From: Phyllobates terribilis
Taxonomy: Eukaryota
Reading direction: 5' to 3'
Length of the DNA: 58,323 nucleotides
Assembly (NCBI RefSeq): GCF_046119375.1
Contig: NW_027367423.1
Coordinates: forward strand, 1-58,323
Position 1 is the first letter of the stretch. Every line of letters starts with the position of its first letter. Below, in pieces: positions 22,091 to 53,387 of this stretch. Made by a program: the position numbers and the translations under genes. Under the pieces are notes generated by a model. The model made no database searches. It saw only the letters and a program-made list of their open reading frames with translations, and was not told where the DNA came from.

Positions 22091-23325
22091 TCAAATGAGT
22101 ATGATAAGGGAGTAGACCCCAAGTGCGACAGGAAATGCAGCTGTATGATTAGGAGCAGGGATGGCCTACCATGTGTGCACGAAATGGCTCCATATGTAAG
22201 GAATGAAATACCATTACCTCTTTCAAGTGTGCATCCATTCTGGAGGACTCTTAGCCTGCAACAAGATCCTTTAGATATTGATGTACTACAAGTCAGACGA
22301 GATGTGTACAAGAGCAAGATGGATGAGTTCGCGCACAATGATTTCAACAAACTATCTCTCGAAGAACAAACCAAGTGTCTATACGAGATGAATAGGATTG
22401 CACACCCTGAACAAACTGATGTGCATGACTTTGCAAATGTCAAACACAAAGGTAGACCTTCGGGTGCAAGAAATAAAGCAAAACCACCTCCACCACCATT
22501 CGGCGTGACCAAGAGAGTGCCATCTCACTGGGAGCATGTTGAAGAAGAAGTTGAGGATATGGGCACACCTCCCAAGAAGCAAAGGAACACACATAAGAAG
22601 ACGGTCTCGGAGGAAGTTCCTTCACATTTCCCTAACCATCTAAGAGTTCCCAAATTACAAACTTCCAAGACGTATTTCAGGTACTTGCCGAAGTTTTTGA
22701 TACAACATATAGTGGGGTGGTATGAAATTGTATCTGATGGAAATTGTGGCTATCGAGCTATAGCATTTAGTATGGGTGACTCAGAAGAGAGTTGGGTGAA
22801 CATAAGAGAGCTCATGATGTTTACAACCAAGACAGAATGGGATGTCTTAGAAAGGACGATGACATCACCTGGTACTATGCATGCTATGCTATTGAAGCTT
22901 CATTTCTTAGATCGGGATTGCTTTGCCCCCAACTTGGTTCGAAGTTCCAGATATGGGTATAATTGCAGCAACTGCTCTTAACATGATATTAGTAATCTTT
23001 AATAAGGGTGACAGCTCTACATACCCACCAATTAGGGCAAGGCCAGATTATGTGCAAGGACAAATTCTCCAAATCGTATGCCTTGGGCACGTGAAAGAAG
23101 AAAATCATTGGATTGCGGTAATATTAACATTCTAAATTGGTACATTTTTTCATTCACGATTAAATATCCTAATTGGCTATATTTCAGGTTCTTCTTGACG
23201 ACGAGTGCCCATTGCCCCCAATTACTTGCATGTGGGGATATCATCGCGAAGAATCGGCTTTACAGTTGATCGCTCCATATATGTCTCGTCTTCAATCTTA
23301 CATTGATAAACTTCATGCACATTAA
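22090..23325 (+). pseudogene. C-terminal half of a MuDR-type transposase (SWIM zinc finger + OTU-like domain) of MULE-1
   Basis: CSCMIRSRDGLPCVH (SWIM), KGRPSG, SDGNCGYRAIA and, after a frameshift near 22925, EENHWIAV; the last exon ends at TAA 23323-23325. The DDE core is absent. Confidence 0.8.
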
Positions 23326-25095
23326 ATTCAATGTAATTTTTTGTAAAATTTTTAGTAATAAAATCAATTACTTTGTTGCCAAAAAAGTGTTATATAAAAT
23401 CAAAATATACCGAAACATGGTGATTGACCTTAACATTCATCTCAATTTACTATGTAGTTAATAAAAATGACTAATAAACTTATTGAAAAATGTTAGTGTT
23501 ATAGGTAAATTACATTGCTCTATATATGGTTAAACGAGAGATGAAACCACATCGATATCATCTTGATAATGCTATAGGCTAGCAAACATTTTATTTTTTG
23601 TTAAAATATAGTATAAAAGACTATATATGTCTTATATATTGTAATAAACTTATTGAAAATTGAGAAAGTGAGGCCAATTGGAATATAAGAGGAACCGGCG
23701 GTTTCTGAAGCATGAAAACCGGCAGTTCCCAGGGTGCGATAACCGGCGGTTCCTAGGGTGGCATAACCGGCGGTTTGTGATGCTCAATAACCGGCGGTTG
23801 GTGGTGTGTAGTAACCGTCGGTTTCTTACCTGCGTTAAAAAGTAAAAAAAAAGCTGCGTTATTTAGTAACACCCTATTTTTATTAATAATTATTCACAAT
23901 TACATCAAGATTTCATCACTAAAGCAAATCTCATTTTTTAAAAATAAATTTCATAGATATGTTATAACAATTATATCTAATTAAGATAAATATAACGCGT
24001 TCTATATCTATAGCTTGTATATTTTTTTGGAAAGGATATAGCTTGTATATTTAAGTGCATGTATGAGACATATGTTAATTAAATTTAAAACAGAGGAATA
24101 AAAGTTCTCAACTCTAAAATTGTTTTTACAACATTTTTTGAAATTCAACTTGACAACTGTTTTTATTGACAAACCCCATTTGCATCCTTGTATGTTCTTC
24201 CATTCCGTCTTTTCAATTTTGAATGCATATAGACTACGCACATGACATGACATAGATAGTTAGATACAGTTCATAAATATCAACATTAGGTATTTAGGTA
24301 GAGCACGGCTATACTTTCAATTTATTTTATTGGATTAGTGAATAATCGAAGAAACCTCAATTTGTAAGTCTGAATTTGACCTCCACGTTCAAATCAAATA
24401 AAGAGAAGACATGACAATAAAATTGTAACAATTATGAAGCAAAAATATACCAACAAATATAAGTTGACATGAGGTAAAATGGATAAAATAAACTCCCTTT
24501 ATATACAAATACGTGTCATTTTAAATTAATTTTCTTATATATAAATACATGTCATTTTATTAACGTTTTCTTACTTTTATTATATTTATCTCTATACAAT
24601 TATTAGATTAAATCTATTTTATTTCTCTTTTTACTTTTCCAATACACTTTATTAGGATTATTTACAGAAGTAACATTCTACCTTAATTTGTATGAATTTT
24701 TGTCTAAAGAAATATATTTGTATCAGGATGGAGTAAAATACAATGACAGATAAATTTAAAGAAATTATGAAAATACTAAGAAAATGGGATAAAGAAAATA
24801 ATAGCATGAGACATAAACCATATTAAAAATTCCCAGCGTCATGTCATGTTTGACTAGCTGGATTGTAAAGACTGAGCAATATACATCTCATAACTTGTTT
24901 GAAGCAGACAATATTGAGCATATGATATATCGCCCCCTCTCTTTGAAGGCAATACCTACCACCTAATTAGAAATAGTTTAGATCAAGATCACAAGTACTT
25001 GCACATAAAAAATGTCGTTACATATACATATAAAATCAAACAGATAAGAGGAGATGGTGTTGTTGATGAATCTGAATAAATTTGTACATCAAGAT

Positions 25096-27952
25096 TCAAG
25101 AATCAACGTTGATCCATTCATCTAAGGTCGGAGTTGCTACCCCAATGTTCTTCATATCAAAAATGTTGGCTGGTTCAGTACACAAAAGTATGTCAGATAT
25201 AAATGACGAACACTCAACCGTAAATCAGTACAAACTGTTCATAAAATCATCTATAATTTGTTAAATTAGTGGATCAAATTTGACATATAGAAACGTTTAA
25301 TTAGAAAATTTAGCTAAAATTATTATATAATAAGAATAAAAAGCGTCAATAAAAGTGGATGAGGTCTGACCAGCATGAATTTCTGGAGTTGCAGCTGCTG
25401 TGGCATCAACAATTACACTGACTGAAGAGAAATCCAATGCTACAGCATCAAAAACTGTTTGCCTAATGCAATTTGGTGTTTGAACACCTACACAGTCCAA
25501 AAAAATATTCAAGTTCAACCATGACAGCAAATAGAACGAGCACACGAAAAAGTTAATACATTACCAGTAACAGCTAAGCTATCGATCCCAGCAGTGCAAA
25601 GCAAAGAGTGAAGGTGTGTAGCAAAGAAGGCACTGAAACGCGTCTTCACTAACTTATAATCTCCCTCGCAAATGATAAGCCCATCAACTAGCTCTGAGCC
25701 AACGCTTCCCTTTGCAGTCGGTCCTGTCTTCTCTGTAGAGTAGTGATGCCGGCGGAATAGTTCTACATCTCGTCCTAATGGATCGTGCTCCCTTACAACC
25801 TTGTTACATATATTTTTTTAGATTTTAGTTTCCATCTAAAGAATGATGCATACAATAGGTAGGTACAGACAGTGAGTGTATGCTACAGGTCAGGGATTCG
25901 ATTTCTCATGGCAACAACCTTCCTGCCTTGTTTATGGAGGAGATGGGTTGGGCTGCAAACCTGATGCTTCTAGTGCCAGGTCCGGCCCAGTTATCATGGG
26001 CCGGGCCCAGGACTGTAAGCCATGCAGCCCAACACATCTCCTCCTTGTAATTAAATTTTGGTTATAGGTAGGTACAGACACTGAGTATATGCTAAAGGTC
26101 AGGGATTCGATTCCTCCTGGCAACAACCTTCCTGCCTTGTTTATGGAGGAGATGGGTTGGGCTGCAAACCTGATGCTTCTAGTGCCAGGTCCGGCCCAGT
26201 TATCATGGGCCGGGCCCAGGACTGTAGCCCATGCAGCCCAACACATCTCCTCCTTGTAATTAAATTTTGGTTATAGGTAGGTACAGACACTGAGTATATG
26301 CTAAAGGTCAGGGATTCGATTCCTCCTGGCAACAACCTTCCTGCCTTGTTTATGGAGGAGATGGGTTGGGCTGCAAACCTGATGCTTCTAGTGCCAGGTC
26401 CGGCCCAGTTATCATGGGCCGGGCCCAGGACTGTAGCCCATGCAGCCCAACACATCTCCTCCTTGTAATTAAATTTTGGTTATAGGTAGGTACAGACACT
26501 GAGTATATGCTAAAGGTCAGGGATTCGATTCCTCCTGGCAACAACCTTCCTGCCTTGTTTATGGAGGAGATGGGTTGGGCTGCAATTCTGATGCCTCTAG
26601 TGTCAGGTCCGGCCTAGTTATCATGGGCCGGGCCCAGGACTGTAGCCCATGCAGCCCAACACATCTCCTCCTTGTAATTAAAGGCAGGAAGGTTGTTATG
26701 AATAGAAATCGAACCCTACCTTCAACATATCATCCTTATTTGGACCAGGGTTGCCTGATTCTCCCAATATATGGAGAATCGCGAATCGATACTCACGTTC
26801 TGGAACTTGATTCTTAGAAGTTCCGGTTCTCCAAGTTCGGCGAATCGGGCGAAGCAAGGATATAAAGGACGAAACGTGTTCCTTTTTGTCATAAATTGTG
26901 TTCCTAGCATACATGAACTTACTATTAATGCATGTTAAACTAATAATGGATGAAATGTTTGATTGAAAAAACGAATGAATTTATAAATAGTAGCGAATCA
27001 TGTTTCAAAGATGAACGAATCACGTTTCAAAATATAACGATCCAACACTTTGTGATTCTCTGACGAATCGATTCTCCAAGAAATGGAGAATCGCGTTCAC
27101 GTTCCGGTTCTTCTGCGAATCAGGCAACCCTGATTTGGATACATATGTCAACGGTTGAGAGATACTATGGATTGTAACTTGTACTAATGAATCTGTGCAT
27201 ACCAATGCATATCGAAAGTGTGAAATCAATTCATGATGTTGTCACAAGTTATCCATCTAACCATTTTACTAACTTCATATTCTACCAGCATGTGTTGTTT
27301 AATCAGGTGAAGTTACGAATTTGACAACATTCTTTTGTGCTCAAGTAATAATAACCAAAATTTAATGATACTCTTGTTGATTCACACAAAAGAAAATCAT
27401 CTTAAGAAACACTATTACAATTTTTCTAGGTCATTTCTTGTGTTTGGTTTGAGTATCAATAAAACCAACAGTCATAGTATTATCTGAACATTTCTAGTTA
27501 GCCCCACCCTCATCATCAAATCTTGATACTGAAGAACATACCCAAAACATATCAATTGAGTTGGTCATAACAACATCAATTGAGTTGAAGCACAGTTTTT
27601 ATGACAGTCTATCAAAAACTCCCTCATCTCTAGGGTTCTATTAAACAAGAAGATTTGATTCATACTTGAAGTGATCAAGAGTAGAAAAAGATACCCAAAT
27701 TACGAGCATCCCACGCTGACGAGCAATTTCTACAGCCTTTACAACATTGGGAACTATAGCTGCTCCCCCAGCAACATGCATCGGACCTCCAGCAAGTATG
27801 AAATCATTCTGAAAAAATGAATTCATAGAGTTTCATCTCTTAATTCTATTAAAACAGGAGGAGATTAGGAAATCAGCTATATTACATAAGCGATAAGGAA
27901 TTACCTGCATATCTATAACTAAAAGAGCTGTTTTCTTCATTTTTTCAGCCAT
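25096..27952 (-). CDS. Isochorismatase-family hydrolase / nicotinamidase-like protein, 195 aa (resembles Arabidopsis At3g16190 as recalled)
   Basis: Exons 27952-27905, 27808-27695, 25799-25565, 25487-25371 and 25169-25096 sum to 588 nt in frame. Motifs ALLVIDMQNDF, KTRFSAF and GVQTPNCIRQT give the family Asp-Lys-Cys triad. Confidence 0.92.
25855..26682. repeat. Tandem array of ~4 x 209 bp built from a foldback element, in intron 2 of the isochorismatase gene
   Basis: AGGGATTCG recurs at 25892, 26101, 26310 and 26519. Units 2 and 3 look identical; each unit is largely self-complementary. Confidence 0.95.
26746..27132. mobile_element. Non-autonomous hAT element
   Basis: TIRs CAGGGTTGCCTGATTC / GAATCAGGCAACCCTG, TSD ATTTGGAC / ATTTGGAT (7 of 8 match), and CGAATC subterminal repeats. 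Confidence 0.9.
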
Positions 27953-28384: not shown

Positions 28385-29985
28385 ATGGGTTCCAAATCCT
28401 ATCCAGGCGAGTTGACACTGTCGCCGCCGCCGGAGCTATCGCCGAGCTTTGAAGAGTTTCAGAAGCAGGCCTCTTTAATGACGTCTTGCACTCTTCTATG
28501 GAAGGAGCTATCGGATCACTTCACTACCCTTGACCAGGATCTTCATCGGAAATCCGAATCTCTCAAGCGGAAAATCCAAGCCCTAGATGATGAGACCAAA
28601 GAGTGTCTGAAGGCTCTCGAGAAGAGGGAGGTCACTATCGACGGCTCCATCAATCTAGCAATTGGAAGGGCGGAAAAGGTGAAGCGCTCCGCAATTAGAC
28701 TTTTGGACGGCGAGGGAGAGGTCGCTGATGACGGAGAGGTGGATGATGGCGAAGGATTGCTTCTTAACCTGCGAGGCTTTTGCATCCGGATGGATCACGA
28801 AGGTTTTTGGAGGTTCGTGACCGCCAGGAAGAAGGAACTGGGGGTGCTTAGGGCGAAGATACCGGTAGCCTTCGTAGATTGTGTTGATCCGCCGAGGTTT
28901 GTGCTGGCGGCCATATCTGAGGTCTTTCCGGTCGATCGGAGACCAGAGAACAGTGACAAGCTGAATGATTTGGGGTGGGCTTGCGTTCTACTACTGGAGT
29001 CGCTAATCCCGGTGGTGATTGATCCGGTGATCGGGAAGGAGAGGTTGCTGGTAACACCGAGGGTGAAGAAGCAAGCCAACGACATAGCAAACACATGGAA
29101 AGCAAGCTTGGAAGAGAGAGGCGGGATTGAAAACGTGAAGACCCCAGACGTTCATACTTTTCTTCAGCATTTAGTCACTTTTGGGATTTTCAAGGATGAA
29201 GATGTCGATTTGTACAGAAATCTCGTCATTGGTTCCGCTTGGAGGAAGCAAATGCCAAAGCTCGCAGTTTCACTTGGGTTGAGCAATAACATGCCTGGTA
29301 AGCTTAAAAACCTCTGACATTAATGGTGACTGGTTTACTCATCAAGCTTTCATGTGTGTGTAGAGATGATTGAGGAGCTAATTAGCAGAGGGCAGCAAGT
29401 GGATGCAGTGCATTTTACTCATGAAGCTGGATTAGTAGATAAGTACCCACTTGTACCCTTGTTGAAGTCTTTCCTTGACGATGCAAAAAAGGCTGCAGCT
29501 TTAATTCTCGAACATCCTAGCAATTCTGGAAAAGCAGCTGTACGTATCTTCTTCTTCTTCTTCTATATTCTCGTACTAGGATGTTATTAACCTTAATCTA
29601 TGATTGGCAGTACCTCGCTACTCGTAAAGAACAGTCTGCTATCCGCGCGGTTCTCAAGTGCATTGAAGAATACAAGCTAGAAGCTGAATTCCCTCCAGAG
29701 AATCTGAAGAAGCGACTTGATGAGCTCGACAAATCCAAGGTTGAGAGAAAGAAATCTATACAAATCCCAGCTAATAAACGTACACGAATATGCAACAACG
29801 GTCGCCATGCAAACAACACCTACGTGTCATCATTTCCAGCCACTGCTACCACCTTCATCCCTTCTCCTCCTGTGTACAGTAACCAGAGCCCAACGTACCA
29901 TTACTCTCCAGAAATTGTTGGATCGTATGGCGGAGGTCCACTGAATTACCAAGTCTATGGTTATCCTCCTCACACTTATTACTGA
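28385..29985 (+). CDS. FRL4: FRIGIDA-like protein, FRL4-type, 487 aa
   Basis: Exons 28385-29297, 29364-29539 and 29611-29985 sum to 1464 nt in frame. Motifs CVDPPRFVLAAISEVFP, WRKQMPKLAVSLGL, MIEELISRGQQVDAVHF and KEQSAIRAVLKCIEEYKL. The subfamily call is from recall. Confidence 0.9.
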
Positions 29986-30797: not shown

Positions 30798-30877
30798 TAA
30801 ACAAGTAATCTTCTTTAAAAATGGAATATCAAAATAATTTCATAATTTTCATGATATAATGTACAAGTTTTGTTAGG

Positions 30878-35574: not shown

Positions 35575-37936
35575 AACACTAGTGTGCAGTCTAGGGAGGT
35601 TGCCACCCCGCATCATCGAAGAAGATGATGCGACTGAACTTAGAGTAAAGATGATGAGTGGGTGTCCTCGAACAAGTAGACCCGACGCTCATCATCCTGA
35701 TATTACAATCAGGTAACCGACCTAGATCAGAGGGTAGGGTGAATGTCTTTATCATCTCCATACAATCGTCCATAGCGCTATTTGATAATGCAAGGGTTTG
35801 AGCATCTTGACTTGCTTCTTTGAAACAATGGAAAAGTTTGAACTTGTTGAACTGTAAGAGCAGATTGTTAATATCTTGAATTACCGCTGAAATCTGCCAA
35901 GGCACCATCCAGATACGATTCATTTCATTTATAAGTTGAAGGTTATCTCCCTCAAGGATAACGTTGTCATGGTGTGCGTTGGAGCAGTATTGCAAAGCTG
36001 TAAGCACAGCTTTTGCCTTAGCCATGGTGGGGAAACAAAGTTGTATACGATATCTATGGACTTGTCAAATGTCACTATTATGGTTGCGAGCTACAAAAGC
36101 AAAGTATGTTTGCCCTTGAGGGCTGACAAATGCATCAAAATTAACTTTAATCCAATTTTGTTGTTGTTTTTTCCAGTAACTATTTTTCCTTCTAGAGTGG
36201 ACCATTGAAGTGGAATGTTTCTTTTCAAAAGAGTCAGATAACGCTGTTCTCCAGTTCGAGAATTGAAAAAACGCTAAGTCAGAAAGAAGATGTTTAGGTT
36301 GGGTAGTGTGTTGGACTATCTTGCTCTCTCGGAGAAGCCAAATGTTATACCATAAAAAGGAAATTTCTTCACATTTAGTATTTGTCTCAAGAAACGTGTC
36401 CAAGTTCTCAGGAAATGAGCCTATAGCCGTAATGTTATAAATGTGATTGATACGTTGTTGGAATCGGTTAATCATGGTTAATGTGTATGGGCATTGAAAG
36501 AAAATATGATTAGAAGTTCCGAGAGGGGATCCACATAGCGAGCACTCACTGGGGACTGAATTGACGAACCTATTCAGCCTCTCCGTAGTTGGGAGGCAAT
36601 CAGTGGCTGATTTCCAAAGAAAGTTTTAAATTTTAGGAGGTATGTGTAGATTCCAAATACCGTGCTTTCTCGTACCAAAAAGATTAGATTGCCTTTGGGA
36701 ATGGTTGTCATGACTTGTCATAAGGGTTGTGGCTGATTTCGTTGAGAAATCTCGTGATGTTGTAATAGTCTAGATAATATGGTCGTTAGATGGGGAAGAA
36801 GTGATACATAAGTTCACTATTAAGTTAACTATATGGGTTGACAGTACAGTTGCTACTTTGAGATGAATGTCTTGGATGGAAGGATCAAAGTAAGAACGAA
36901 TATTTGTATCAGGAATCCAGTTATCTATCCACAAATTAATGTGTTTACCGTCGTCAACGATCCACAACACACCTTTATTGAAATTGTCGCAGATGAAGCA
37001 GGGGCGAGAATTTCCATGATCGGTTTGCCTTTGTTTTATACGAAAAGATATTTTTTGTACGTAGATTTTTCTAAGTTATGATCCATACCCGTATGTTTTT
37101 GGGCTCAGGCAATATTTTCCAAAGTAATTTCATTTGCAGAGAGCTGTTAATACGAGCTGCTTTTGCAGTCCTATACCTTTAAGAGGTTTAAACCTAAAGA
37201 TTTTATCCCATGCTAGAAGAGGAGGTGCAGTGAAATGTTGCTTATTCCAAAAGAATTTCCTATTAATCTCATCAATTTTGTTACAAACGCCTACAAGAAG
37301 CAGAAAACTTTGTATGAGATAGTTTATTTTTTTTATTGTAGATTAGACTGAATGAGAGTTGTTCTTCCCGCTTATGATAGAGAATTTGATGTCCAAGAAG
37401 ATAACTGTTGTTGCAATTTTGAAATGGCATAGTCAAATCAGGAGTTTTTAATTCTACATGCTATAACTGGAATACCCATATATTTTTCCATAGACTTAGT
37501 AACGTGGAGATTGAGGATGGATGCAAGCCGAGCACGAGTTTGTTGGCAGAATGTTAATCGAAGTTTGGAAGGAACTTTTATGGAAATTGATTGTAAGTCC
37601 GGAAAGTCTAGTAAACCGTTGGAAGACACCGTGAATGAATCGTATGTTCTTTTCTGTGGCATCTGCAAAGATGATTGTGTCATCAACAAATCTGGGAAAT
37701 GGGATGATGGTACCATGTTTAGTGAGTTTAATTCCCACTCTGCGATTTTGTTTGTCATCCTCAATTTGCAATGCACGTGTTAGGGACTCTAATGCAAGAA
37801 TGAATATTGATGGTGCTAACGGGTCTCCTTGTCTTAACCCGCATTTGAATTTAAACACTAGACCTGGAATATTGTTAACGAGAACTGAAACAAATGTGGA
37901 GCGAATACAATTCATTACCAACTCAATCCAAGAGTT
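35575..37936 (-). mobile_element. 5'-truncated decayed L1 LINE (RT, zf-RVT, RNase H-like domain)
   Basis: GLRQGDPLAPSIF, RFVDDTIIF, YMGIP, WIVDDGKHINLWIDNWIP, WIKVNFDA, ILEGDN and HCFKEA motifs across several broken ORFs. Confidence 0.88.
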
Positions 37937-38267: not shown

Positions 38268-39017
38268 TAAATTTCAATCAAACACTCGCATCTAAAAGAA
38301 AGCATTGACAGTTTATGGTGGGCAATACTTAAACAAATAACATTTAACAATCTAAAATTAAATTGCTGAGATTAGAGAACAAAATTAATGAGATTGTGAC
38401 TCGTGGACGTTATGTGTTGCAGAGAATCGGCGGCGTCAGTTGCAAGTGACTTCAGCAAGCGTGAGTCAAGCTCACCGGCGCCGCTTCTCAGGAGTAGTCA
38501 ACTAGTCACGCACGACGTACTCCTGTACTCGACTTGACAGTCGCAGGCGACGACCCAATGCGGAGGGCGGCTGCAAGAGGGTTGAGGTGAGGGTTTGTTA
38601 TGAAAAAGAATTTGAGCCGTTTAAATTTTTTAATAAAACACGTCGTTTTGATCAATCTGAAACTATATCGTTTTAACACTTCACTTAAAAAACCCCTAAA
38701 TTTCTAATGTCTTCCTCTTCTACGTTTAATTTACAGAGGCCTCCATTGATAAACTATTCCTCGCCCCTCCATTTTTGAACATATACTAAGTAATCCGGGA
38801 GGAAAGCAGGGGGCGTTGGACCATCCAAGCCCCTCCCTAGATCCGCCACTCACATATTCTACATCACAGTTTCGAGTCTGATGAATCTCAACCAAAACAA
38901 CAACGCCAATCGCTGAAGCCTGACGATCCGGTAGATGCCCGCAACTTGTTCGATGATATGCCTCTGAGAACCTTCTCCTTTTCCACCCTCCATCTGAACC
39001 TCCAATCCTTAGTGTTC

Positions 39018-40007
39018 ATGATGCTAATACTTTTCAGAAGATGCAATTTCATTTCTACCGCTAGAATCAACCCTCGCGCTATTACATGTTTGAATACATT
39101 CCGACTGTTTGCTTCAGCATCTCTGAATGAAGACAGGAGCAGTCACTGTAAGAATCACCCTGACGATTTATCGTTTCCTCCTCTCGTTCCTCAAGATCAG
39201 TCCCCTCTTAGTAGCACCGAGATCAAGGTATTTGATTCCGACACTTGGGAGCTTTCTTCAGGTCTTGCTTTTATGTCAAAGAGCTACAGTTACAGACATC
39301 AGACGAATTCATTCTGCAGAGACGAATTCAACGATGAAGTGTGTAATAACCGTTCGGAATTCAACAACGAGCTTGACATCGACGAGATCGAAGACATGAG
39401 GATTCGCGACAGCCTGTTTTACAAAATCGACCGCGGATCCAAGGAGTTTGAAGAGTACCAATTCGACTACCATGGGAGAAAACCTCGTTACGACAAAGGT
39501 CCAGAAAAGAACGAACCCCCTTCAAACAACACAAACTCTGTCGAAGAACAAGTTTCTAGGGTTATCAAAGAAAACTACATCGTGTGCAGTTCAGATGATA
39601 ATAATCCAGTAAAGAAACAAAGGAAGCCGACATTCAATCAGGTTAGTGGACCGTATTTAGAGCCATTCTGTTTGGATGTTTACATATCAAAGCAGTCAGT
39701 TCGTGCATGTATAGTTCATAGAGTGAGTAGCAAGGTTGTTGCTGTTGCACACTCCATTTCAAAGGACATGAAATCTGATCTGGGTTCTACTAGAAATGCA
39801 TCTGCTTGTGCTGCTGTTGGTAGAGTTCTTGCTCAGAGAGCTTTGGCGGATGACATTCATGATGTTGTTTTTACTCCAAGGAAAGGTGAGAAGGTGGAAG
39901 GTAAACTTCAGGTTGTGCTTGATTCCATTAGAGATAGTGGTATAAACTTGAAGGTGAAGATGAAGCAAAGGAATGCCAAGAGAGCTGTTGTTTATAATAT
40001 GCCATAG
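39018..40007 (+). CDS. Ribosomal protein uL18-like (L18p/L5e family) protein with a long N-terminal extension, 329 aa, probably organelle-targeted
   Basis: Single uninterrupted ORF. The C-terminus has EPFCLDVYISKQSVRACIVHRVSSKVVAVAHSISKD..GRVLAQRALADDIHDVVF; the N-terminus is Arg/Ser/Phe-rich like a transit peptide. First ATG at 39018 (the ORF track starts at an upstream TTG). Confidence 0.88.
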   Translation: MMLILFRRCNFISTARINPRAITCLNTFRLFASASLNEDRSSHCKNHPDDLSFPPLVPQDQSPLSSTEIKVFDSDTWELSSGLAFMSKSYSYRHQTNSFCRDEFNDEVCNNRSEFNNELDIDEIEDMRIRDSLFYKIDRGSKEFEEYQFDYHGRKPRYDKGPEKNEPPSNNTNSVEEQVSRVIKENYIVCSSDDNNPVKKQRKPTFNQVSGPYLEPFCLDVYISKQSVRACIVHRVSSKVVAVAHSISKDMKSDLGSTRNASACAAVGRVLAQRALADDIHDVVFTPRKGEKVEGKLQVVLDSIRDSGINLKVKMKQRNAKRAVVYNMP

Positions 40008-41941: not shown

Positions 41942-44900
41942 TGTTAGGATAATTTCCTATTATGTGTTATTTGGGTTCAGACTTGTAATTTATGTATTGG
42001 GCCAGTGATGTAGTTAGAGGCCCAAGTGGGTGTTTGCTCAGGTAGAAGTCCAGGAGCTTGCTAGCCCAAAAGTGGAGCTCGTCCGGTTCACTTAAACTCC
42101 CAGTTCAGAGCTAGGATATATATATCCTGGTTTTTTAGGGTTCAAACCCTAACCCTCATTCTTCACTTGAGTTGTGCTGTTTCCTTGAGAGCGTTTGGTG
42201 TTTGTTCTTGTGGCGATTCCTGTTCTGGTGTTCCGATACGAAGCTGGTGAAGTTTCTCGCTTTGCCTTTGAGAGAAGAAGACGATGGTGGCTTGTTCTTC
42301 TCCTTTATGGTGGTGTTTCCATCTCTTTGGTGGCATGGCTCCATTGAAGGGTTGGTGAAGCTCTTGCTGGCACACTTCGGCTGTTCACCTCGTTGGGAAG
42401 TTGTTCTTCCTTTTAGATCTTGTTGTTCTTGATCTTGTTTACTTGTCTGAGCTGATTCTGAGGTTGCTCCTCTTATTGTATTTGCTTGACTGTGTGCATA
42501 GTGGAATAAGCTCTCATCCTGAGGCCCACAGACGTAGGACATTTGTCCGAACTGCGCAAACAAATCTTTGTGTTGTTTGTGTTCGTATTTTGGTAGATCT
42601 GAACCTGTGAATCTCGAAATAACCTAATTGAAACTCAATCTCACAGATTGGTATCAGAGCCAGGTTGTTTTGCGACTTGCATGCGTTTTTTCCTTGTTCT
42701 TTGAGACTTATATTGGCTTGCATGTTCATTTCTTGCTTTTGTGTGGATCTGAACTGAGTTGCATGTTCTTTTGATAGTCTCTGAGATGTGGATTGGCTTG
42801 CATGTTCTTGATATTATATGCTCTGTCTTGATTCTGACCTTGATCGCTTCCGCATGTTGTATTGATCTGGTTGTTTGAGGTCCTTGTGGATTGAATCTTG
42901 ACTTTGTGACTTCACCTCTGGTGTTGGAGTCATTTGTTGAGTACACTACTGTGGTGTTACTTGATTTGATTTTCAGATCTGAGTGAACTTTTGTGTTCAC
43001 TGGATCTTGGAAAATCACTTTTTGATCTGAGTTTGTGCTTTGGATCCCTGTTGTGTGATTACTTGTGCAAGCTATGTCTTGGACTATTTCTGGTTCCTTT
43101 GTGTGTGTGATTGGTTCGTTGTTACTGATGTATGATAAGAACTTGATTACTACACTAACTTGTGTAATTGGCCAGGTACTATGGCCGATAACAACATCAG
43201 GATGAAGCTGTTTGATGGCAACACTGACTTTGCCATGTGTCAGGTCAAGATGAAGGTTGTCTTGATCAAAGAAAAATGCCACAAAGCTATAACTGGGGAC
43301 TACCTTGCAGAAACTTCCCATGCTAGACGCCTTGAGATAGATGAGCAAGCCCATTCCGAAATCATGATCAGGTTGGCCGATGATGTGGCCCGACAAGTAG
43401 TACAATACACTACTACTAAGGATTTATGGGAAGCTCTAGAATTTTTATACTTGATTAAGTCATTGCCTTCTAGGATTTCATTATTGTGTAGACTGTTTAC
43501 ATTTAAACTAGACATTAATCACACTTTAAATGATAATTTGGATAGGTTTCTTAGAATGACACAAGACTTAGCTAGATGTGATGATAAGATAAAAGGATCT
43601 CATGAGACTGTCCTATTACTTAATTCTTTACCTACTCAGTTTGATAACTTGAAAGGTGTGATTCAATTTAGTTCTGAAAATTGACTAAGTTAAAGATCAT
43701 AGAAGCTATAACTGAGAAGAATGAACTGTTAAAGGTTTTTTAAGACTAAGAATGACAAAAAGTTTGAGTCTAAACCTGAGGTCTTGTATACTGATAACAA
43801 GAATAAAAAGAAACAGAAGTATAAGAATGATAAGAAAAGGACTTTAGCTCTTCTAAAGAGTCTGAGCAAAAGAAAAAAGATCTCTATTGCAAGAAGGGTG
43901 GTCACTTCATTAAGGATTGCTATAAAAAAAGGACGAGTCTTCTAAAACTAATAACAATGATAACTCTGCATCTATCTTAGAAACTCAGGAATTCTATGAT
44001 TGTGAATTGCTCATGTGTTTTAATGTGCCTATTAGTAATAATATTTGGATTCTAGATTCTGGATGTACCATGCATGCTACTTCTAATAGATCCCTGTTTT
44101 AGCTCTTTACATGAAACTAATGGGGGAAATGTTATGTTGGGAGACGATAGTACCCTTAGGATAAGAGATATAGGAAATGTTGCTTCAGAATACATGATGG
44201 TAAAATAAGGAGTTCTCCAAAATGTTAGGTGGATACCCAAACTTAGGAGAAACTTACTCTCTGAGTCTGTGTTTGATAATATGAAGTGTCAAATTAACAC
44301 TAGTGATGGAATTAGAGATATTCTCAAGGATGGTAAGACTCTAATACGAGGAATCAATAAGGCGGGCTATACCATGTTATAACTACACCTGAACTAAACC
44401 TGACCCAAAACTTGTGATATTTTGACCCTTGATCAAACTAAACTATGGCATAGTAGGATGGGTCACATATGTTCTAAGGGTCTGAATTATCTGTTTAAAC
44501 TGGGCCTAATTAATAAGAAACCTAGTGATTTGGACATGTGTGAAGATTGTATACCTGGAAAGAAAACTAATGCTCCTTTTCCCAGGTCAAATTATGTGGC
44601 TAAAAATCCTCTAGAATATATGCACTCAGACCTTTGGGTCCTGCTCAAGTAAGCACTATAGGAGGTAGAGGTATTTCATGTCTTTCATAGATCGTTTTTC
44701 TAGGAAAACTTGGATATACTAGCTTAGAACTAAGGATGAAGCATTTACCACTTTTAAGAACTAGAAGCATGCTGTTGAAAACCAAGTAGATTGCAAATTA
44801 AAATGTCTAAGAACAGATAATGGCCTTGAGTATTGTAACCAAAATTTCACCAATTATTGTCTTGAAAATGGAATAAAAAGACATCTAACAGTGCCTGGAA

Positions 44901-47900
44901 CCCCTCAACAAAATGGTATTGCTGAGAGGATGAATAGGACAATGTTAGATAAGGCTAGATGTATGTTAATAAATTCTGGCCTTAAACATGTTTTTTGGGG
45001 TGAATCTGTCACTACTGCATGTTTTTTAATCAATAGGTCTCCTAGTTCTACTATTGAATTTAAAACACCCCAAGAATTATGGTCTGGACACAAACCTGAT
45101 TTGAGTCACTTGAGAACTTTTGGATGTGTTGCTTATGCCAAAGTTTCTCAAGGTAAACTTGAACCAAGGGCTATAATGTGTCATGTTGAATTACCCTGAG
45201 GGAGTTAAAGGTTACAAACTCTTGGTAATCCAACCACATGGATTTAAGGTCATTACATCTAGTTGAATTTAATGAAAATAAATTCCATTTTAAGGATAAA
45301 TTGACTGTGGTGAATGAGCAAGCAAGTACCAATGAAGATGAAACCACGGTGGTGAGATCATCCAGGCAGCCTGATGTAGAGGTAGTCCAACAACTCCCAC
45401 AAGATGAGGAGTTTTATCTTGCCCTTCACTCCATGACTGAGAGTGAGTCAGTTAATGAGGAGGAAGAAGTAACCAGAAGCTCTAGAGAGGTTGATAACCC
45501 AGAGCCTGGAGGTGTTGAAAATGGCAATGTGTCACCATTAAGGGAGGGTAACATGGAAGATAATGGTAACAGTGTATCTTCTATCCCTTTGTCCTACTCT
45601 AATTCAGATACTGTCTATAGCAATAATAAGCATAATAATTCTGCTAATGAGCATGATAAGTCTGATAATAGTAATATGAATGACTTAAGTGATTATCAAT
45701 TGACTAGAGACAGAACTCCTAGGATTAGAGTGCTAAACAAGTGGTTATCTTCTAATAATGTTGAACATGTCATTAATGGAAATAGTCAATTTAGTAGAGT
45801 ATGCTTTTACCTACTGCCTCTGATATCCATGATAGATTCACACCTGACACTTTTGAGCATGCTATAAACTATAAAAATACTAAGGAATGGATAAGTGCTA
45901 TGAATGATATGAGATTAGTTCCATGAATGTTAATAAAACTTGTCTTTGGTTCCTAAACCTAAAACGCTAAATTAATTGACTGTAAATGGATATTCAAAAT
46001 TAAGGAAGGAAATAGCATAAAGGATCCACCTAGATACAAAGCTAGGTTAGTGGCCAAATGATTTACCCAAGAAGAGGGGATTGATTATAATGATATTTTT
46101 GCCCCTGTAGTCAAGTATAAGACTATGAGACTGCTATTAGCTATATGCATTGTTTATAATTGGGAATTAGAATAAATGGATGTTAAAACTGCTTTCTTAC
46201 ATGGTGATTTAAATGAAACTATATATATGGCTCAACCTAAGGGTTTCATTGACAAATCTAGACCTGACTATGCATATTTACTTAGTAAGTCTATATATGG
46301 CCTTAAACAGTCACCTATACAGTGGAATTTAAAATTTGATTCATGCATGAAAAAGTTAGGGTTTCATAGAAGCAGTTATTACACTTGCCTTTATTTTAAG
46401 AATATTAAAACTGCATCTCCCTTGTATGTGTTGTTATATGTTGATGACATTCTGTTAATATGTAACTCTAAGGTTAGTATTTCAGGAGTTAGAAGGGACC
46501 TTAAAATGTATTTTGATATGAAAGATTTAGGCTCAGCTCAGACGATTCTAGGTGTTAGAATTATAAGAAATGGGCAAAAGAAACTCATGTGGCTTTCACA
46601 AAAGGATTATATACATAAAGTCCTAGATAAATTCAACATGAATGATTCTAAACCTACTTCTATACCCTTAGGAGGGCACCTAGAGCTAAACTGAAATTGA
46701 TTAGATGGCTAAAATCCCCTATGATGTGGCTGTTGGATCTGTTATTTATACTATGTTATGCACTAGACCAGACCTTGTATTTGCTGTTAGTCTGCTTAGT
46801 AGATTCATGTCTAACCCAGGTGAACTACATTGGACTGCTATGAAATATGCTTTGAGTTATCTTAACCAAGAACTTGTGTTTATGTTATTCTAATCATGCT
46901 AGTGATAAAGAATTATTTGGATTTGTTGATAGTGATTATGCTAGTAATAAGGATACTAGAAAATCTACCACTGCTTTTGTTTATACTTGGGCTGGTAATT
47001 GTATATCTTGGAAATCACAACAACAACCTATAGTTGCTTTATCTAGTACTGAAGCAGAATATATTGTAGCTAATGAGGCTGCTAAAGAAGCCATTTGGCT
47101 TACTGGGTTACTTAATGAGATTAAGTTTAATTCTTATGTTCCTGTTTTGCATATTCAAAGTGCCTTATATCTTTGCAAGGATCCTGTTTACCATGAACGG
47201 TCAAAACATATAGATGTGAGATTGCATTTTACACGAGACTTAGTTGATGAAAAACAAATAATTGTTAGAAAGGTTAAGGGTGACTACAGTCCTGCAGATT
47301 TTGGGACTAAGATTGTTACAACTGATAAGTTTGCATTTTGTAGGGATTTCCTCCATGTGTGGGATGTTCCTTAGGGGGCTACATAAACTGGTTTGATGAC
47401 GGAGAGGGCATATTCCACTCCCTGGTCTAGGCGATGGTTGTGCGTGTACAACTAAGGGTTAGGGCTTTGCACATATAGCAAATTAGGAGGGCAATTGTTA
47501 GGATAATTTCCTATTATGTGTTATTTGGGTTCAGACTTGTAATTTATGTATTGGGTCAATGATGTAGTTTGAGGCCCAAGTGGGTGTTTGTTCAAGTAGA
47601 AGCTCACGAGCTTGCTAGCTCGAAAGTGGAGCTCGTCTGGTTCACTTAAACTCTCGGTTCAGAGCTAGGATATATATATCCTGGTTTTTTAGGGTTGAAA
47701 CCCTAACCCTCATTCTTCACTTGAGTTGCGTTGTTTCATTGAGAGCGTTTGGTGGTTGTTCTTGTGGCGATTCCTGTTATAGTGTTCCGATTCGAAGCTG
47801 GTGAAGTTTCTCGCTTTGTCTTTGAGAGAAGAAGACAACGGTGGCTTGTTCTTCTCCTTTGTGGTGGTGTTTCCATCTCTCTGGTGGCGTGGCTCCATTG

Positions 47901-48199
47901 AAGGGCTGGTGAAGCTCCTGCTGGCACGCATCGGTTGTTCACTTCGTTGGGAAGTTGTTCTTCCTTATAGATCTTATTGTTCTTGATCTTGTTTACTTGT
48001 CTGAACTGATTCTGAGGTTGCTCCTCTTGTTATATTTGCTTGACTGTGTGCATAGTGGAATAGACTCTCATCCTGAGGCCCGCAGACGTAGTACATTTGT
48101 CCGAACTGCGGAAACAAATCTTTGTGTTGTTTGTGTTCGTATTTTGGTAGATCTGAACCCGTGAATCTCGAAATAACCTAATTGAAACTCAATCTCACA
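41942..48199 (+). mobile_element. Full-length Copia LTR retrotransposon (Tork/Tnt1-like), decayed
   Basis: LTRs 41942-42645 and 47496-48199 (704 bp each, TG..CA), TSD TGGTA, tRNA-iMet PBS TGGTATCAGAGC at 42649-42660, and PPT AGGAGGGC at ~47485. Confidence 0.96.
43181..47374 (+). pseudogene. Copia gag-pol (gag, protease, GAG-pre-integrase, integrase, RT, RNase H), disrupted
   Basis: KLFDGNTDF (gag), WILDSGCTMH (protease), LWHSRMGH, TPQQNGIAERMNRT (integrase), MDVKTAFLHG, LLYVDDIL (RT) and ALSSTEAEY..KHIDVR (RNase H); multiple stops and frameshifts. Confidence 0.93.
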
Positions 48200-48900
48200 T
48201 GGTAGTGTACTGAAGAATATACCAATAACATACTGAAAAATGCACCATTTTTAACGATTCTGTACAATCCGCACGGAGGATTAGTTTACGCTGGAAACAT
48301 CTTATATTAACGTGTACTCGTTCTATTTGACACCTGAATCGTCTTATCTTTTTCAATTTCAATTATACTCCTTTAGTATGCTTAGCCTACTTTGTGATCC
48401 GAACTACCAAGATCAGTCAAAAATCGTAAAGAAGTCGAGTGTTTAGAAAATCTGTTATTTCTCAGTTGAATCCCAAAATATACATTTGAGGGAACTGCTT
48501 GATGGTGAATGTTGATCACGAAGAAGATGGATGTAAGTAATAATTATAGATGCTTCTGAAGCGAAAGATGAACGACCTCAGATCTCTAGAAATTGATGTA
48601 TTGTAAGCAGAACTGTTCATTAGTTCAAACGGTTCGAGAAACTTTTGTACTAGCTCAGCTTGTTGAACTGCTACCCTGATGTGATTATGTATATCAGAAC
48701 CTTTCTGCTCAACCACATTAATTAATACTGTATATATAATATATTTACCCGGATTGGATTGTCCTAATCTCTGATTATAGATTAAGCATACAGGAATCAA
48801 GCTTGAGCATATATGCAAGAAAAGAGGAAGTAAACACACCATCAGATTCCGGAAAACTGAACAAGAACCAACATTTTACAACACAGAGTATAGTAATCAG

Positions 48901-49356
48901 TCAGTCATTAGCGGTGACTAATTGCAGAGAGAGGAGCTCCTCCTCAGGGATGACTCTGATATGGCAATCCGATCTCGGATAGGCGGCGCAGAGCAGCGCG
49001 TAGCCACGCTCAACCACATCATCGCTCAACATTCCGTCACTCTGATCAACTTTACCGCTAATGAGCTTAGCAGGGCAAGTCATACAGACTCCAAGCTTAC
49101 AATCATGGGGGACATCCATTCCACTATCTAACGCCTTCGATAATATGCTCTCATCGGGATCCACTTCTAGCTCAGTCGACTGCCCTTCGTGCTCGACCAC
49201 CACTTTGTAGGAGCACACCATGGCGGACCATCTCTGTGTAAGGCGACTAGAACTGAGAGGGGTTTTGAGGTTGAAAGGGAGGGCTGATGATGGGTGTTTT
49301 TGTTTTGTGTGGATGATGAAGGTGGGAGGAGGAGTTGTGAGATTCAGTGTTGCCAT
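48901..49356 (-). CDS. FdC1: Chloroplast 2Fe-2S ferredoxin with C-terminal extension (FdC1-type), 151 aa
   Basis: CKLGVCMTC...LLCAAYP cluster ligands, EEELLSLQLVTAND tail and an N-terminal transit-peptide-like segment; single exon. Confidence 0.92.
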   Translation of the reverse strand: MATLNLTTPPPTFIIHTKQKHPSSALPFNLKTPLSSSRLTQRWSAMVCSYKVVVEHEGQSTELEVDPDESILSKALDSGMDVPHDCKLGVCMTCPAKLISGKVDQSDGMLSDDVVERGYALLCAAYPRSDCHIRVIPEEELLSLQLVTAND

Positions 49357-50140
49357 TTCTGGGATTTGGAGGATTAGGAGGATGGAGAATTCAAAGGCGG
49401 ACAGGAGATTGTGTGGTTGCTAGTTTTTCATCGGATAGATTTGGGCGATGGATTGTTTGCTTCCTTTTGGGCTTAGCATGGGTTGTGGTGTGTAATTTGG
49501 GCTTCAATTCTCTTCTGGGCCTTTACCAGCTTTTTCAACTACTTACATGTGTGTTTGGTGAAATCTTAGTAAAAACTTTTTTCTAGATAAATGTTTATTT
49601 CCGGATATTTTAAATTTTTAATTGTTATTGAATACAACTTTATATAAGGCTGTGTCTTTATACACTCCATTATTTGGCTGCGTACACTCCAAAATCAAAA
49701 CGCAATATTTTTGCGTTTGTAAAATTATCGCGTTTAGTTGTAAATTTGGATTCGGAGGAGGCAGATACGAAAAAGACGAAACGCAGGTATTCCGCGTTAG
49801 CGAAATACCTGCGTTTATATTTTTTTTTGTATGTAACGCAGTATTCTTGCGTTAGCAGGAATACTGCTAACGCAGGAAAAACGCGTTTGGCTGGTGCTGT
49901 TTCACACCAGCCAAACGCAGGATTCCTGCGTTAGCAATTTTCCTGCTTACGCAAAAATCCTGCGTTAGCAGGAAAACTGCTAACGCAGGAATCCTGCGTT
50001 TCGTGTTAAATGTAACCGTTTGAATATGACCGTTGGAAAACGCAAATTTTTTTGCGTTTTCAACGGTCATATTTTACGAAACACTATAAGTACATCTCCA
50101 TAATCCTTTAGGTAGAACAAATCATTTTGTATGCACAAAA

Positions 50141-53100
50141 AATGTCTACTAGTCAAGAGAAGATAGTAAAGTTACGGAAGATTATGAGGAGTACGTTGAT
50201 CATTTGCCCGATAATGATAATGAGTTTGATCATTTGCCCGATAGCGAAGACGATGATGATTTTGACGTTGATAATTTTCCGTTTAGTACTTATTTTTCAT
50301 ATATTTATACATTTTTATCCCTCATTTGTAGTAGATACAATTTGGTAAATATAGTTAGATGTTTGATTTGAATGTGTATATTTAGACAAAAAGTAAAATT
50401 TGGAAAATGTTTGAAAATACAGGGAAGATATTGTGGAAAGGAATTTGAGACTAACTTGAAATGAGAAAGTCGAGATGATTTGGTTGATTGGGTAAAGAAA
50501 ATGGGGAAAGAGTTGATGATGTGTTTAGTTATTCAACGAAGTACCATTAGATATGTTAGCTTGGTTTGTGAACATTTTGGAGAGCAAAGATTGAGAAAGA
50601 AAAAAAGTGATTACGTAGATGAAGGGGAACGGGAGATTGTTGTGGAAACTCGTGAAGGGAAGAAATCGGGGTGCACATTTAGGCTTGTAGGTGTAGCGGA
50701 GAAGAAGAGTAAGCATAAAACAATTGACCGCAAATGGATATTGCGCATAGTGAGTGGTGTACACAACCACAAATTGTTGACTCACTTTCAAGGGCATGCA
50801 ATCATCGGTCAATTAACCGAGCAAGAGAAGATATTGGTGCGGAGCTTAGGTGAGTCATATGTTCCCCCATCTGCTATATGTAATGCATTGAAAATCTCAT
50901 TTCCGGGGAATGTCACTTCGCCAAAACAAGTTTCAAACTATCTACAAAAAGTGCAATTCGTGAACCGTGGGGATTTGACGTTCACCCAATGGACGCTCAA
51001 TTTCTTAAAACTACGCAAATATGAAGTGTTTCCATTGAGGGAAAATCGGACCAATGAAGTGGACGTCTTATTTTTTGCACACGTTGACTCATTGAAGCTT
51101 CTTAAGAGGTTCCCGTATGTTATCGTCATAGACGTCACATACAAGACAAACAAGTAAGTGATACATCATTTATAGTTTATTAGAATTTATCAAATTTTGG
51201 ATATGTTCTTATGTTTCTTGTATTTTAACGTTAGGTATAACATGCCTTTGGTAGAGATTGTCGGTTTTACATGTACTCACAAGACATTCAACATCGCATA
51301 TGCGTTTACCAAGAAAGAAGAGATTGTTCATTACACTTTCATCATGAGAAAGCTTCGTTATTTGTGCGAGGAAGCCGGAGTCATGCCAACGGCTATAATG
51401 ACCGATCGAGAGAAATCACTGATCAATGCAATCCATATTATATTTCCGGAGGCTAAACACTTATTGTGTTGGGTTCATATAAAGCACAACATTGAAGCTT
51501 ATTGTTCCCCTCTTTTGAAGAATCCTGAAGCAATAAAAGCTTTTTGTGGACAATGTTGGAGACTCTTTTGCTCATATACGGAGGAAAGCTATGAAAAGAA
51601 GCTTGAGGAGTTGAAGAATTCATGGAATCCCGGGTTGGTTAGATATGTTAGAAGTGGTGGCTAACACCTTACAAGGAAAACATAGTTAGAGCTTGGACTG
51701 ACCACCATCTCCACTTTTTCACAAGAACAAGTAACAGGTATCGTAATTGTAAAACCTTATATATATTTTTAGACGATCCATAAATTATTGTCTTTATTAT
51801 TGTTGATTGTTTTGAAAAGGGTCGAGGGTATGCACAAGGTGTTGAAGAGAATTGTGGATTCAAGTATAGGCGGGTTTAGCAGGATGGTGGTCCGAATCGA
51901 CTCCGCGATTGACAGCCAAGTTTGTAAGATTAAGGCAAGCATGGAGATATCACGGATCAAGATGCCCACACAATACAACAAGATGAAACCACATATCAAG
52001 ATTGTGTTTTCTAGACTCTTTTATAGAGTATCAGATCGGGGCTTGATGACCTTGTATCATTTATACGAGCTATTAATTGCGGGAAAATTTAAAGAAGAGT
52101 GCGATGATTACTGGATGACAGAGTGTCTTGGCCTACCTTGCCTTCACACAATTGCTAGAGCTATCATTAAGAGGAGGCCAATCATGCCTTCCGAGATACA
52201 CCGCTTCTGGAAGCAGATTGATTGGGATAGGATAATCCGTTCTGACGCCGACAATGTTACAGGTGATGATGTCAATATGACTGTTGGAGAGATGAGGTGC
52301 AACGAGTTTTCCCAAAAGTTTCAAAGAGGTGAGCTAAAGAAATCAACAATAGAGCATATGGGTGATGTTTTCACAGACTTGGAGTACCCTAACGAGACAA
52401 CCTTGTTGGAGCCCACAATGATCAAGCCAAAAGGAAGACCCAAGGGGTCCACCAAGTGGTCCACGAAGAGAGATCCGAGTGGGTTCGAGTATGCGAGAGA
52501 GGATGTGGATAAGATGGAAAAGGCAAAAGAAGTAAAGAAGGGAAATAAAAGGGGGAGTCAAGTAAGAAGTCAAAGAAAAGAGAAAGAAGAACATGATGAT
52601 GTAGAGGGGAGTCAAGTTTATAACGATCATGAAGAAGTATCAGGATCACAATCTGTCGGGGAACCGATCACTCATTTGGGGATGGACTTTGGAGTCAACA
52701 ACATTGATTACTTTTGGTATCCGTTCATTAAGGAGGTGAAGGATGTAGCTGGAGACGGACATTGTGGGTATCGCTCGATGAGTGTACTTTTGGGTGGAAA
52801 TGAAGAAAACTACAAGAGGATTCGACTCACTTTGGCATCTCACCTGGTTGCCAACAGATCATTGTATGAACCCGCGTTAGCAAGACTAAATCCCGGAAAG
52901 TCATATGATAGCTACGTAATTTCAGTGAACTACATGTTGAGCCCTTGCCCACAGAGTTTCTGGTGCGATATGCCCATGGCCGGTCTGGTATTTGCAACAG
53001 TTTATCAAGTAGCTTTGGCATTCTTGTCTTGGAATGGTCCGTGCTTATGCTTGCCAATGATGACATCACAATCAAGACTGGATGGTGATGGACTTCGGAT

Positions 53101-53387
53101 ATTGGCAATGGCTCAAGTAGGCAAACAAAACCACTTCATACCGGTATGTCTTATTTTTTCCAGGTTTATGCTCAATTGATCATATTAACATATTTGAACT
53201 ACCTTTCACTTTTTCTTATTGTAGATATGGCTTACTGATGGAAGTCCTCTCCCCCCGACTCCATATGCATGGCATCAATTCAAACATATAAGTGTAGAAG
53301 GTTGGGACGAAACATTTGCTTCAAGGATTTCAATGTTTAGGGACTTTCGCGTTGCATATGGTCGATCGGCTCATAGTTTGGTTTAGG
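50141..53387 (+). pseudogene. MuDR/FAR1-type transposase with a C-terminal OTU-like domain (MULE-2)
   Basis: SKKSGC..HNH (FAR1/WRKY-like DNA-binding domain), IDVTYKTNK|YNMPLVEIVG, IMTDREKSLINAI, HLLCWVHI, RVEGMH, GLPCLH, GDGHCGYRS and QNHFIPV. In-frame TGA at 50462-50464 and a -1 shift near 51655; the 5' exons are uncertain. Confidence 0.88.

Follow-up and report, generated by a model that had tools for sequence, protein, structure and literature searches.

Two decayed Mutator-like elements carry a C-terminal domain with a predicted OTU protease fold, shared with a large family of angiosperm transposases

The window analyzed here, a stretch of 58,323 nucleotides (contig NW_027367423.1 of RefSeq assembly GCF_046119375.1, recorded as Phyllobates terribilis), contains two Mutator-like elements (MULEs) of a plant family, MULE-1 and MULE-2. 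According to profile searches and structure prediction, the C-terminal domain of their transposases has the papain-like cysteine protease fold of the ovarian tumor (OTU) superfamily, with a length of about 200 residues, and homology searches indicate that this domain defines a large angiosperm family. Both copies in the window are pseudogenes, and their OTU residues are “kept” only insofar as the decay is recent. What the domain is, to which family it belongs and in what state the two copies are can, taken jointly, be stated with good confidence. An original prediction, made by reading the sequence, had proposed an OTU-like protease with its catalytic residues kept in two unrelated MULE transposases, where it might strip ubiquitin from chromatin or from the transposase.

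The motifs of the DGxC…H signature were located at the predicted places in both copies. In MULE-2, the Cys box GDGHCGYRSMS (52751-52783, Cys codon 52763-52765) and the His box QNHFIP (53126-53143, His codon 53132-53134) both fell within a single open reading frame (ORF) of 463 amino acids at 51788-53179. The Cys box of MULE-1, SDGNCGYRAIA (22733-22765, Cys codon 22745-22747), was inside an ORF at 21860-22981 on the forward strand, while its His box, ENHWIA (23100-23117, His codon 23106-23108), was in another reading frame (ORF 22923-23135), the two boxes being split by a frameshift. Upstream of the domain, a SWIM motif, CSCMIRSRDGLPCVH (CxCx10CxH, 22136-22180), and the AT-hook-like KHKGRPSG (22442-22477) were read by eye in MULE-1, as were a degenerate SWIM-like motif of the form C..C..CxH (52100-52147) and the AT-hook-like KPKGRPKGSTK (52424-52456) in MULE-2. 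SWIM and KGRP motifs thus preceded the OTU domain in both copies, as had been described, with no match of the Pfam SWIM model to either of them. The order SWIM, AT-hook, PSxFE-like motif and OTU was common to MULE-1 and MULE-2. The strong divergence noted between the two proteins was also recovered, with about 23% identity from SWIM to the Cys box, and their C-terminal domains aligned in register, starting about 20 residues ahead of the Cys and ending at the His.

Assignment to the OTU superfamily was based on profile and fold comparisons. A profile made from a 54-member family alignment (A2, mean column identity of 31%) was searched against 177,635 PDB sequences, and its significant matches were OTU proteins only, namely 6dx5 (E 4.5e-8), OTUD5 (5.3e-6), OTUD3 (6.7e-6), VCPIP1 (2.1e-5) and OTUD1 (5.5e-4); the first of these, the Farallon virus OTU, was aligned with the profile from the Cys box to the His. 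The window domain as a single sequence gave weak matches in the PDB, to OTUD3 (4bou, E 0.029) and a nairovirus-type OTU (6dx2, E 0.13). An AlphaFold2 model of window positions 52697-53143 reached a predicted local distance difference test score (pLDDT) of 95.3, and its top 50 Foldseek matches in the PDB were all OTU structures, among them OTUD3 (E 3.7e-6, TM 0.65-0.68), OTUD1, DUBA, nairovirus vOTUs and VCPIP1. The complete domain was modeled on a relative from Tetracentron (P0063, residues 692-894; AlphaFold2 pLDDT 95.5). With this model, VIA-align ranks 1-35 were all OTU or OTU-like viral proteases, with Z scores of 14.1 for VCPIP1, 13.2 for OTUD3, 13.1 for OTUD1, 12.6 for Cezanne, 11-12 for vOTUs and 11.6 for A20. 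In the model of the window domain, helix H23-31 begins at the Cys and the His lies in strand E146-148. The layout of the domain is a Cys box DG[N/H]CG[Y/F]R at the start of a helix and a His box NH[F/Y/W][V/I] in a strand, followed by a conserved P-x-P-P…W…W tail that is coded by a separate last exon.

Pfam scans of the window ORFs and the isolated domains gave, at the Cys box, only sub-threshold matches to Peptidase_C65 (PF10275, otubain; E 0.0036-0.35), scoring 10.7-17.2 bits against a cut-off of 24.3. The Pfam OTU model (PF02338) matched neither window sequence, and none of the 54 members reached the Pfam gathering score for PF02338 or PF10275, with weak matches to OTU in 9/54 and to Peptidase_C65 in 34/54. 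Among the checks proposed with the original prediction, the Pfam OTU model did not recognize the domain, and structure prediction returned an OTU fold, so that the original prediction was not refuted on the ground of its fold. A verdict of “not OTU” from Pfam alone would be misleading. The silence of the Pfam OTU model would also favor the view that the DGxC and His motifs are chance resemblances without an OTU fold, but this view is already refuted by the profile-to-PDB search and the two independent fold searches, all of which gave only OTU structures, and practically no weight is left to it.

A word-index protein search gave three close relatives without names, and an exhaustive HMMER search, for which a small alignment (A1) served as query, then returned 1171 cluster representatives (50% identity) at E<=1e-3, 393 of them at E<=1e-10. 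Ten long members were scanned for domains, and in six an AFT/FAR1 domain (WRKY-GCM1 type) and the MULE core (PF10551) stood upstream of the OTU domain; the other four comprised two evident gene-model fusions, one protein in which it lies on the N-terminal side of a MuDR-type DNA-binding domain, and one without a Pfam match. The architecture of the family consists of a FAR1/AFT DNA-binding domain, a MULE DDE core, SWIM, an AT-hook, a variable linker and the OTU domain. Conservation of the catalytic Cys and His across family copies, on which the original prediction depended, was observed: DGxC was present in 144 of the 151 best family matches, and 126 of 132 aligned domains had the His, which had not been a criterion of selection. 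Near-invariance among the 132 domains extended to the Arg of CG[F/Y]R and to one Trp, one Gly, one Thr and one Pro. Conservation was compared region by region through identity, as close copies are pseudogenes that differ little and distant ones are saturated. Against five relatives, the identity of MULE-2 was 34-62% in the OTU domain, 32-57% in the transposase post-core/SWIM region and 15-29% in the linker. The OTU identity is near that of the transposase and well above that of the linker, which implies that the domain has been conserved in the manner of the transposase and not of a passenger.

Members of the family appear in databases under various names. UniProt lists “OTU domain-containing protein” for A0A835A098 (Tetracentron) and V7B3P0 (Phaseolus), proteins of a kind that the window copies match directly, and there are a “MULE transposase domain-containing protein” in Aquilegia and a “Protein FAR1-RELATED SEQUENCE” in Rhododendron; members from Rosa, Tripterygium and Cannabis are nameless. 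In RefSeq, Vigna members carry the misnomer “PKS-NRPS hybrid synthetase CHGG_01239-like”, which looks like an annotation artefact. The name CHGG_01239 refers to a protein of the fungus Chaetomium, and a similar sequence may exist in fungi. One 90%-identity cluster (P0104) holds the MULE-OTU proteins of Vigna unguiculata, Phaseolus vulgaris (PHAVU_008G000100) and P. coccineus, with several RefSeq isoforms, and has the Cys box DSNC instead of DGNC. The Vigna gene (L001 6001-8871, CM014067.1) is situated among ordinary genes, with an Agenet-domain neighbor, and this Vigna/Phaseolus cluster may represent a domesticated MULE-OTU gene.

In both window elements the frame ended a few codons after the His and was followed by a predicted GT..AG intron (MULE-1, 23118-23187; MULE-2, 53144-53224; both on the forward strand), which is a phase-0 intron separating His+4 from His+5. 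The domain runs over this intron into a last exon with a common P-L-P-P…W motif. In MULE-1 this exon (23188-23325, forward strand) codes for the C-terminal extension ECPLPP…W and a stop, as recognized by blastp to family members, and in MULE-2 (53225-53386, forward strand) for SPLPP…W…W and a stop. The annotated Vigna unguiculata gene of relative P0104 has an intron at exactly the same site, between HFVQ and VAL. Many ORF-type database relatives stop directly after HF[V/I]xV, as would be expected if the intron is widespread. Support for the intron calls comes from homology, from the GT..AG sites and from the exons of the annotated Vigna gene; two runs that contain the element, made up of contigs in fragments without a recorded library type and in all likelihood genomic, yielded no splice joints.

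MULE-1 is an internally deleted element, truncated at its 5′ side, with an OTU domain split by a 5-bp deletion. In tblastn it aligned to full-length relatives solely from about residue 479 onward, and the same search with full-length relatives matched no DNA-binding domain and no MULE/DDE core for it in the window. The transposase remnant at 21860-22981 (forward strand) includes SWIM, the AT-hook, the start of the OTU domain at ~22682 and the Cys box, and the second half of the OTU core, with the His box, continues in a shifted frame at 22923-23117 (forward strand). The frame moved from 2 to 3 between 22810 and 22935 in tblastn with four relatives (P0097, P0104, P0154 and P0157). A DNA alignment (A4) with a close copy (L003) placed the responsible 5-bp deletion at ~22931, within 22926-22935 on the forward strand, between the Cys and His boxes. 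This close copy, a metagenome scaffold of 563 bp, was compared with window positions 22880-23330 and had 88-93% amino-acid identity to MULE-1 in the coding pieces and, with gaps counted, a mean column identity of 86% in the DNA alignment. It has an 88-bp deletion of its own, which eliminates the intron together with the His codon and two last-exon codons and leaves an open ORF of 118 amino acids (P0040). That this ORF might be a spliced transcript of a MULE-1 relative was ruled out, as the DNA alignment shows the 88-bp deletion to be genomic. At the ends of MULE-1, a repeat search detected only subterminal inverted repeats, on the left at 19197-19327 and, in inverted orientation, on the right at 23717-23799.

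MULE-2 is a full-length element of 7.6 kb with its frame shifted between the DDE core and SWIM/OTU. Its terminal inverted repeats of 61 nt (49639-49699 and 57170-57230) are 72% complementary and 7.5 kb apart, and no target-site duplication of 9-11 bp was discernible in the flanks, which are AT-rich and palindromic. Its exons, all on the forward strand, code for a putative DNA-binding domain of the FAR1/AFT (WRKY-GCM1) kind with the first part of the RNaseH-like core (50432-51153), the MULE transposase core (51235-51737; PF10551, E 1.7e-20), and the SWIM-like motif, AT-hook and OTU core (51820-53143, with the OTU core at 52697-53143). The matches to FAR1 (E 0.026) and ZSWIM1-3_RNaseH-like (E 2.8e-4) were both below the Pfam cut-off; the FAR1 region aligned in tblastn with relatives that bear AFT/FAR1 matches. 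The frame is broken after 51649 by a 1-bp deletion upstream of SWIM/OTU. The alignment of relative P0157 changed from frame 2 to frame 1 at 51652, the out-of-frame piece at 51652-51738 still codes in translation for a conserved MULE motif, and in a public run (X1) an extra G at the 51649 site was found in 16 contigs, amounting to 77% of depth. In the same run, 2094 short contig pieces with 90-100% identity fell on the MULE-2 stretch (window 50100-53500), which indicates that MULE-2 belongs to a high-copy family and points to recent activity of that family in the genome of this run. Differences between the run and the window copy were mostly transitions.

The claim that both transposases keep their catalytic residues consequently holds only in part. 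Cys and His are present in both copies, but neither can make the protein, owing to frameshifts and truncation, and the third catalytic residue is absent from its usual His+2 position, which is occupied by Ile in both.

The two MULEs had been called unrelated, and this description did not hold. In tblastn, full-length relatives that matched one copy from SWIM to OTU also matched the other, and the two have the same domain order and the same phase-0 intron site, which is also found in the Vigna gene. The common architecture and the common intron site of MULE-1, MULE-2 and the Vigna gene make a single ancestral fusion likely, so that the OTU domain was, judging from these sequence features, likely inherited from one fusion event and not kept twice independently. 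MULEs are known to capture fragments of host genes, and the identity of only ~23% between the two proteins could suggest that each element separately took up a fragment of a host OTU gene in the manner of Pack-MULEs, the similarity then being convergent retention. Such a double capture would not account for AT-hook and PSxFE-like motifs, domain order and intron site that are common to MULE-1, MULE-2 and the Vigna gene, for the same architecture in most of the long members scanned among the top matches, or for relatives that match both copies continuously from SWIM to OTU; it is very improbable.

Fusions of this kind have been reported before. Babu, Iyer, Balaji and Aravind (2006) described an OTU domain at the C terminus of MULE transposases from Medicago truncatula (PMC1702500). 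As far as the described architecture goes, these are like the family to which the window elements belong in their WRKY/FAR1-type DNA-binding domain, MULE core, SWIM, AT-hook and C-terminal OTU, and differ in nothing essential, apart from the window copies being defective. The mid-2000s annotation of Medicago already contained “Ovarian tumor otubain” (PMC2613891), and a survey of the FAR1 family in quinoa gave the CDD match “OTU_plant_OTU9-like” (PMC11573983). An active role for OTU and Ulp1 domains in transposition, by way of the ubiquitin and SUMO pathways, was proposed by Bao et al. (2010; PMC2836005). The fusion and the general idea are therefore already published, with annotation also in UniProt, and neither the fusion described in 2006 nor the ubiquitin-pathway role proposed in 2010 is new with the original prediction.

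Related arrangements occur in other transposons, with OTU in Helentrons, OTU or Ulp1 in Ginger1, and Ulp1/C48 in KI-MULEs and CUMULE (PMC2836005, PMC6431247, PMC9741609). They resemble the MULE-OTU proteins in having a thiol protease of the ubiquitin or ubiquitin-like system fused to or encoded beside the transposition enzyme, for which benefits to transposition or protein stability have been proposed, and they differ in belonging to other superfamilies or folds (C48, VTD), among which only the Helitron VTD was shown to be active. The VTD domains of Helitrons are active deubiquitinases that cleave K48, K63 and K11 chains (Erven et al., 2022; PMC9741609), and they provide a precedent for active deubiquitinases borne by transposons.

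Cellular OTU proteins (OTUD3, OTUD1, OTUD5/DUBA, VCPIP1 and A20/Cezanne/TRABID) share the fold of the MULE domain (Z 11-14, TM 0.6-0.7). They also agree with it in the Cys box (DGNC.FRA-like) and have their His in the corresponding strand. The C-terminal extension of the family was best aligned with the longer OTUs of the VCPIP1 and A20 type, over 173 and 166 residues, respectively. Identity to the cellular proteins is 12-20%, and the MULE family differs from them in a Gly after the Cys (CG[F/Y]R), in Val/Ile for Asp/Asn at His+2, in its fusion to a transposase and in an activity that is predicted only. Viral OTUs, i.e., the vOTU of Crimean-Congo hemorrhagic fever virus and those of the Farallon (6dx5) and Dera Ghazi Khan (6dx2) viruses, include the best profile match (6dx5, E 4.5e-8), have fold Z scores of 11-12 and, like the MULE-OTU domain, are carried by a selfish genetic entity. 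In contrast to the MULE domain they have Asp at His+2, are N-terminal on the RNA polymerase, and are proven deubiquitinases and deISGylases.

In intact members of the family, the domain would be an active thiol isopeptidase, either a deubiquitinase or a protease for ubiquitin-like modifiers. The AT-hook and the DNA-binding domain would bring it to element DNA, where it would take ubiquitin-type marks off the transposase complex or off nearby chromatin or repair factors, to the benefit of the element, and catalysis would be carried out by the Cys-His pair with a third partner that is not at the usual His+2. The probability of this reading, with an active isopeptidase brought to the element and removing such marks for its benefit, is estimated at roughly 50-60%. 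Besides the shortfall of the Pfam models, several points weigh against it. Position His+2 was Val, Ile or Leu in 116 of 126 members and Asp or Asn in 0/126, and the Asp of 6dx5 aligned to Val in the family, so that the family would have either a Cys-His dyad or a third residue from elsewhere, and activity cannot be assumed. Among the public runs searched, no RNA run with the element was found. The substrate and the benefit to the element are wholly inferred, and the anti-silencing or stabilizing role put forward in the original prediction is likewise pure inference. Erven et al. (2022) stated that OTU domains of transposons were without a catalytic test (PMC9741609), and no later activity test of such a domain was found in the literature searched, in agreement with the remark in the original prediction that no functional test was known.

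The missing His+2 residue is also an argument for a domain without catalytic activity, serving the transposase as a ubiquitin-binding or purely structural module. This possibility would fit with the failure of family members to reach the Pfam OTU model and with the DSNC box, in place of DGNC, of at least one conserved lineage (Vigna/Phaseolus P0104). Dead protease domains, however, usually lose their nucleophile, whereas here the Cys (144/151) and the His (126/132) have persisted at 25-60% identity. A20-type OTUs, moreover, are active with an acidic residue located elsewhere, A20 itself using an upstream Asp, and an inactive module is accordingly considered unlikely. The domain could alternatively be a self-processing protease of the polyprotein type that cuts the transposase or a partner protein of the element, as proposed by Babu et al. 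for the Medicago MULE-OTU fusions (PMC1702500). Its structural neighbors include OTU-like proteases of viruses with a double function in polyprotein processing and deubiquitination, namely the turnip yellow mosaic virus protease (Z 6.0), arterivirus PLP2 (Z 5.0) and the PLP2 of porcine reproductive and respiratory syndrome virus (Z 4.4). The nearest folds are nevertheless cellular deubiquitinases (Z 12-14) and not these viral processing enzymes, and the transposase, as one multidomain protein of an ordinary kind, does not evidently have to be cleaved. No ubiquitin-like Gly-Gly site was found between transposase and domain, including in the two window copies, and of 66 members only 3 had GG in the 120-residue stretch preceding the OTU domain, as against 14.9 expected from shuffles. 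Self-processing is thus held to be about as unlikely as an inactive domain. The shortage of GG in the linker may reflect avoidance of self-cleavage or mere positional composition.

An active isopeptidase in intact members leaves room for a more far-reaching proposal, which is tentative and rather doubtful as a whole. The family would then be a distinct OTU subfamily, marked by its escape from the Pfam model, by the lack of Asp/Asn at His+2 and by its VCPIP1/A20-like extension, and would act as a transposase-tethered deubiquitinase that counters ubiquitin-dependent host restraint. The restraint so countered could be, for example, turnover of the transposase or silencing linked to histone ubiquitin, in a form of counter-defense that would be comparable to that of VANC in VANDAL elements.

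Both OTU-bearing MULEs also contain a plant mobile domain (PMD) gene, on the reverse strand in each case. The PMD gene of MULE-1 consists of two ORF pieces at 19952-21299 (PF10536, E 3.6e-31 and 3e-06), and that of MULE-2 lies at 55017-56087 (PF10536, E 5.6e-14). Their placement is unlike: in MULE-1 the gene is divergent and upstream of the transposase remnant, and in MULE-2 it is convergent and downstream. Dense subterminal short repeats in the two elements are candidate transposase binding sites. In MULE-2 they are nested palindromes built on AACGCAGGAATCCTGCGTT, situated at 49773-50007, after the left terminal inverted repeat, and in MULE-1 they are AACCGCCGGTT units repeated at both ends (19197-19327 / 23717-23799). 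Around the two MULEs the window contained host genes, namely a Frigida-like gene at 28385-29985 (PF07899, E 6.8e-53), a gene for an L18p-type organellar ribosomal protein at 38946-40007 and a 2Fe-2S ferredoxin at 48901-49356 (reverse strand), and other elements, namely a LINE-like RVT_3/RT remnant at 35591-37921 (reverse strand) and a Copia-type retrotransposon (RVT_2) at 43160-47374.

The finding in itself adds little, since it confirms by profile search and fold prediction an annotation of 2006, and both copies in the window are relics. Mildly unusual are the failure of the Pfam OTU model to detect a large family and the absence of the canonical residue at His+2. MULE, Helitron and Ginger elements have repeatedly come to carry ubiquitin-family proteases, and the activity of MULE-OTU proteins would bear on whether deubiquitination is a general strategy of transposons against host control, as well as on how an OTU domain may work without the usual residue at His+2.

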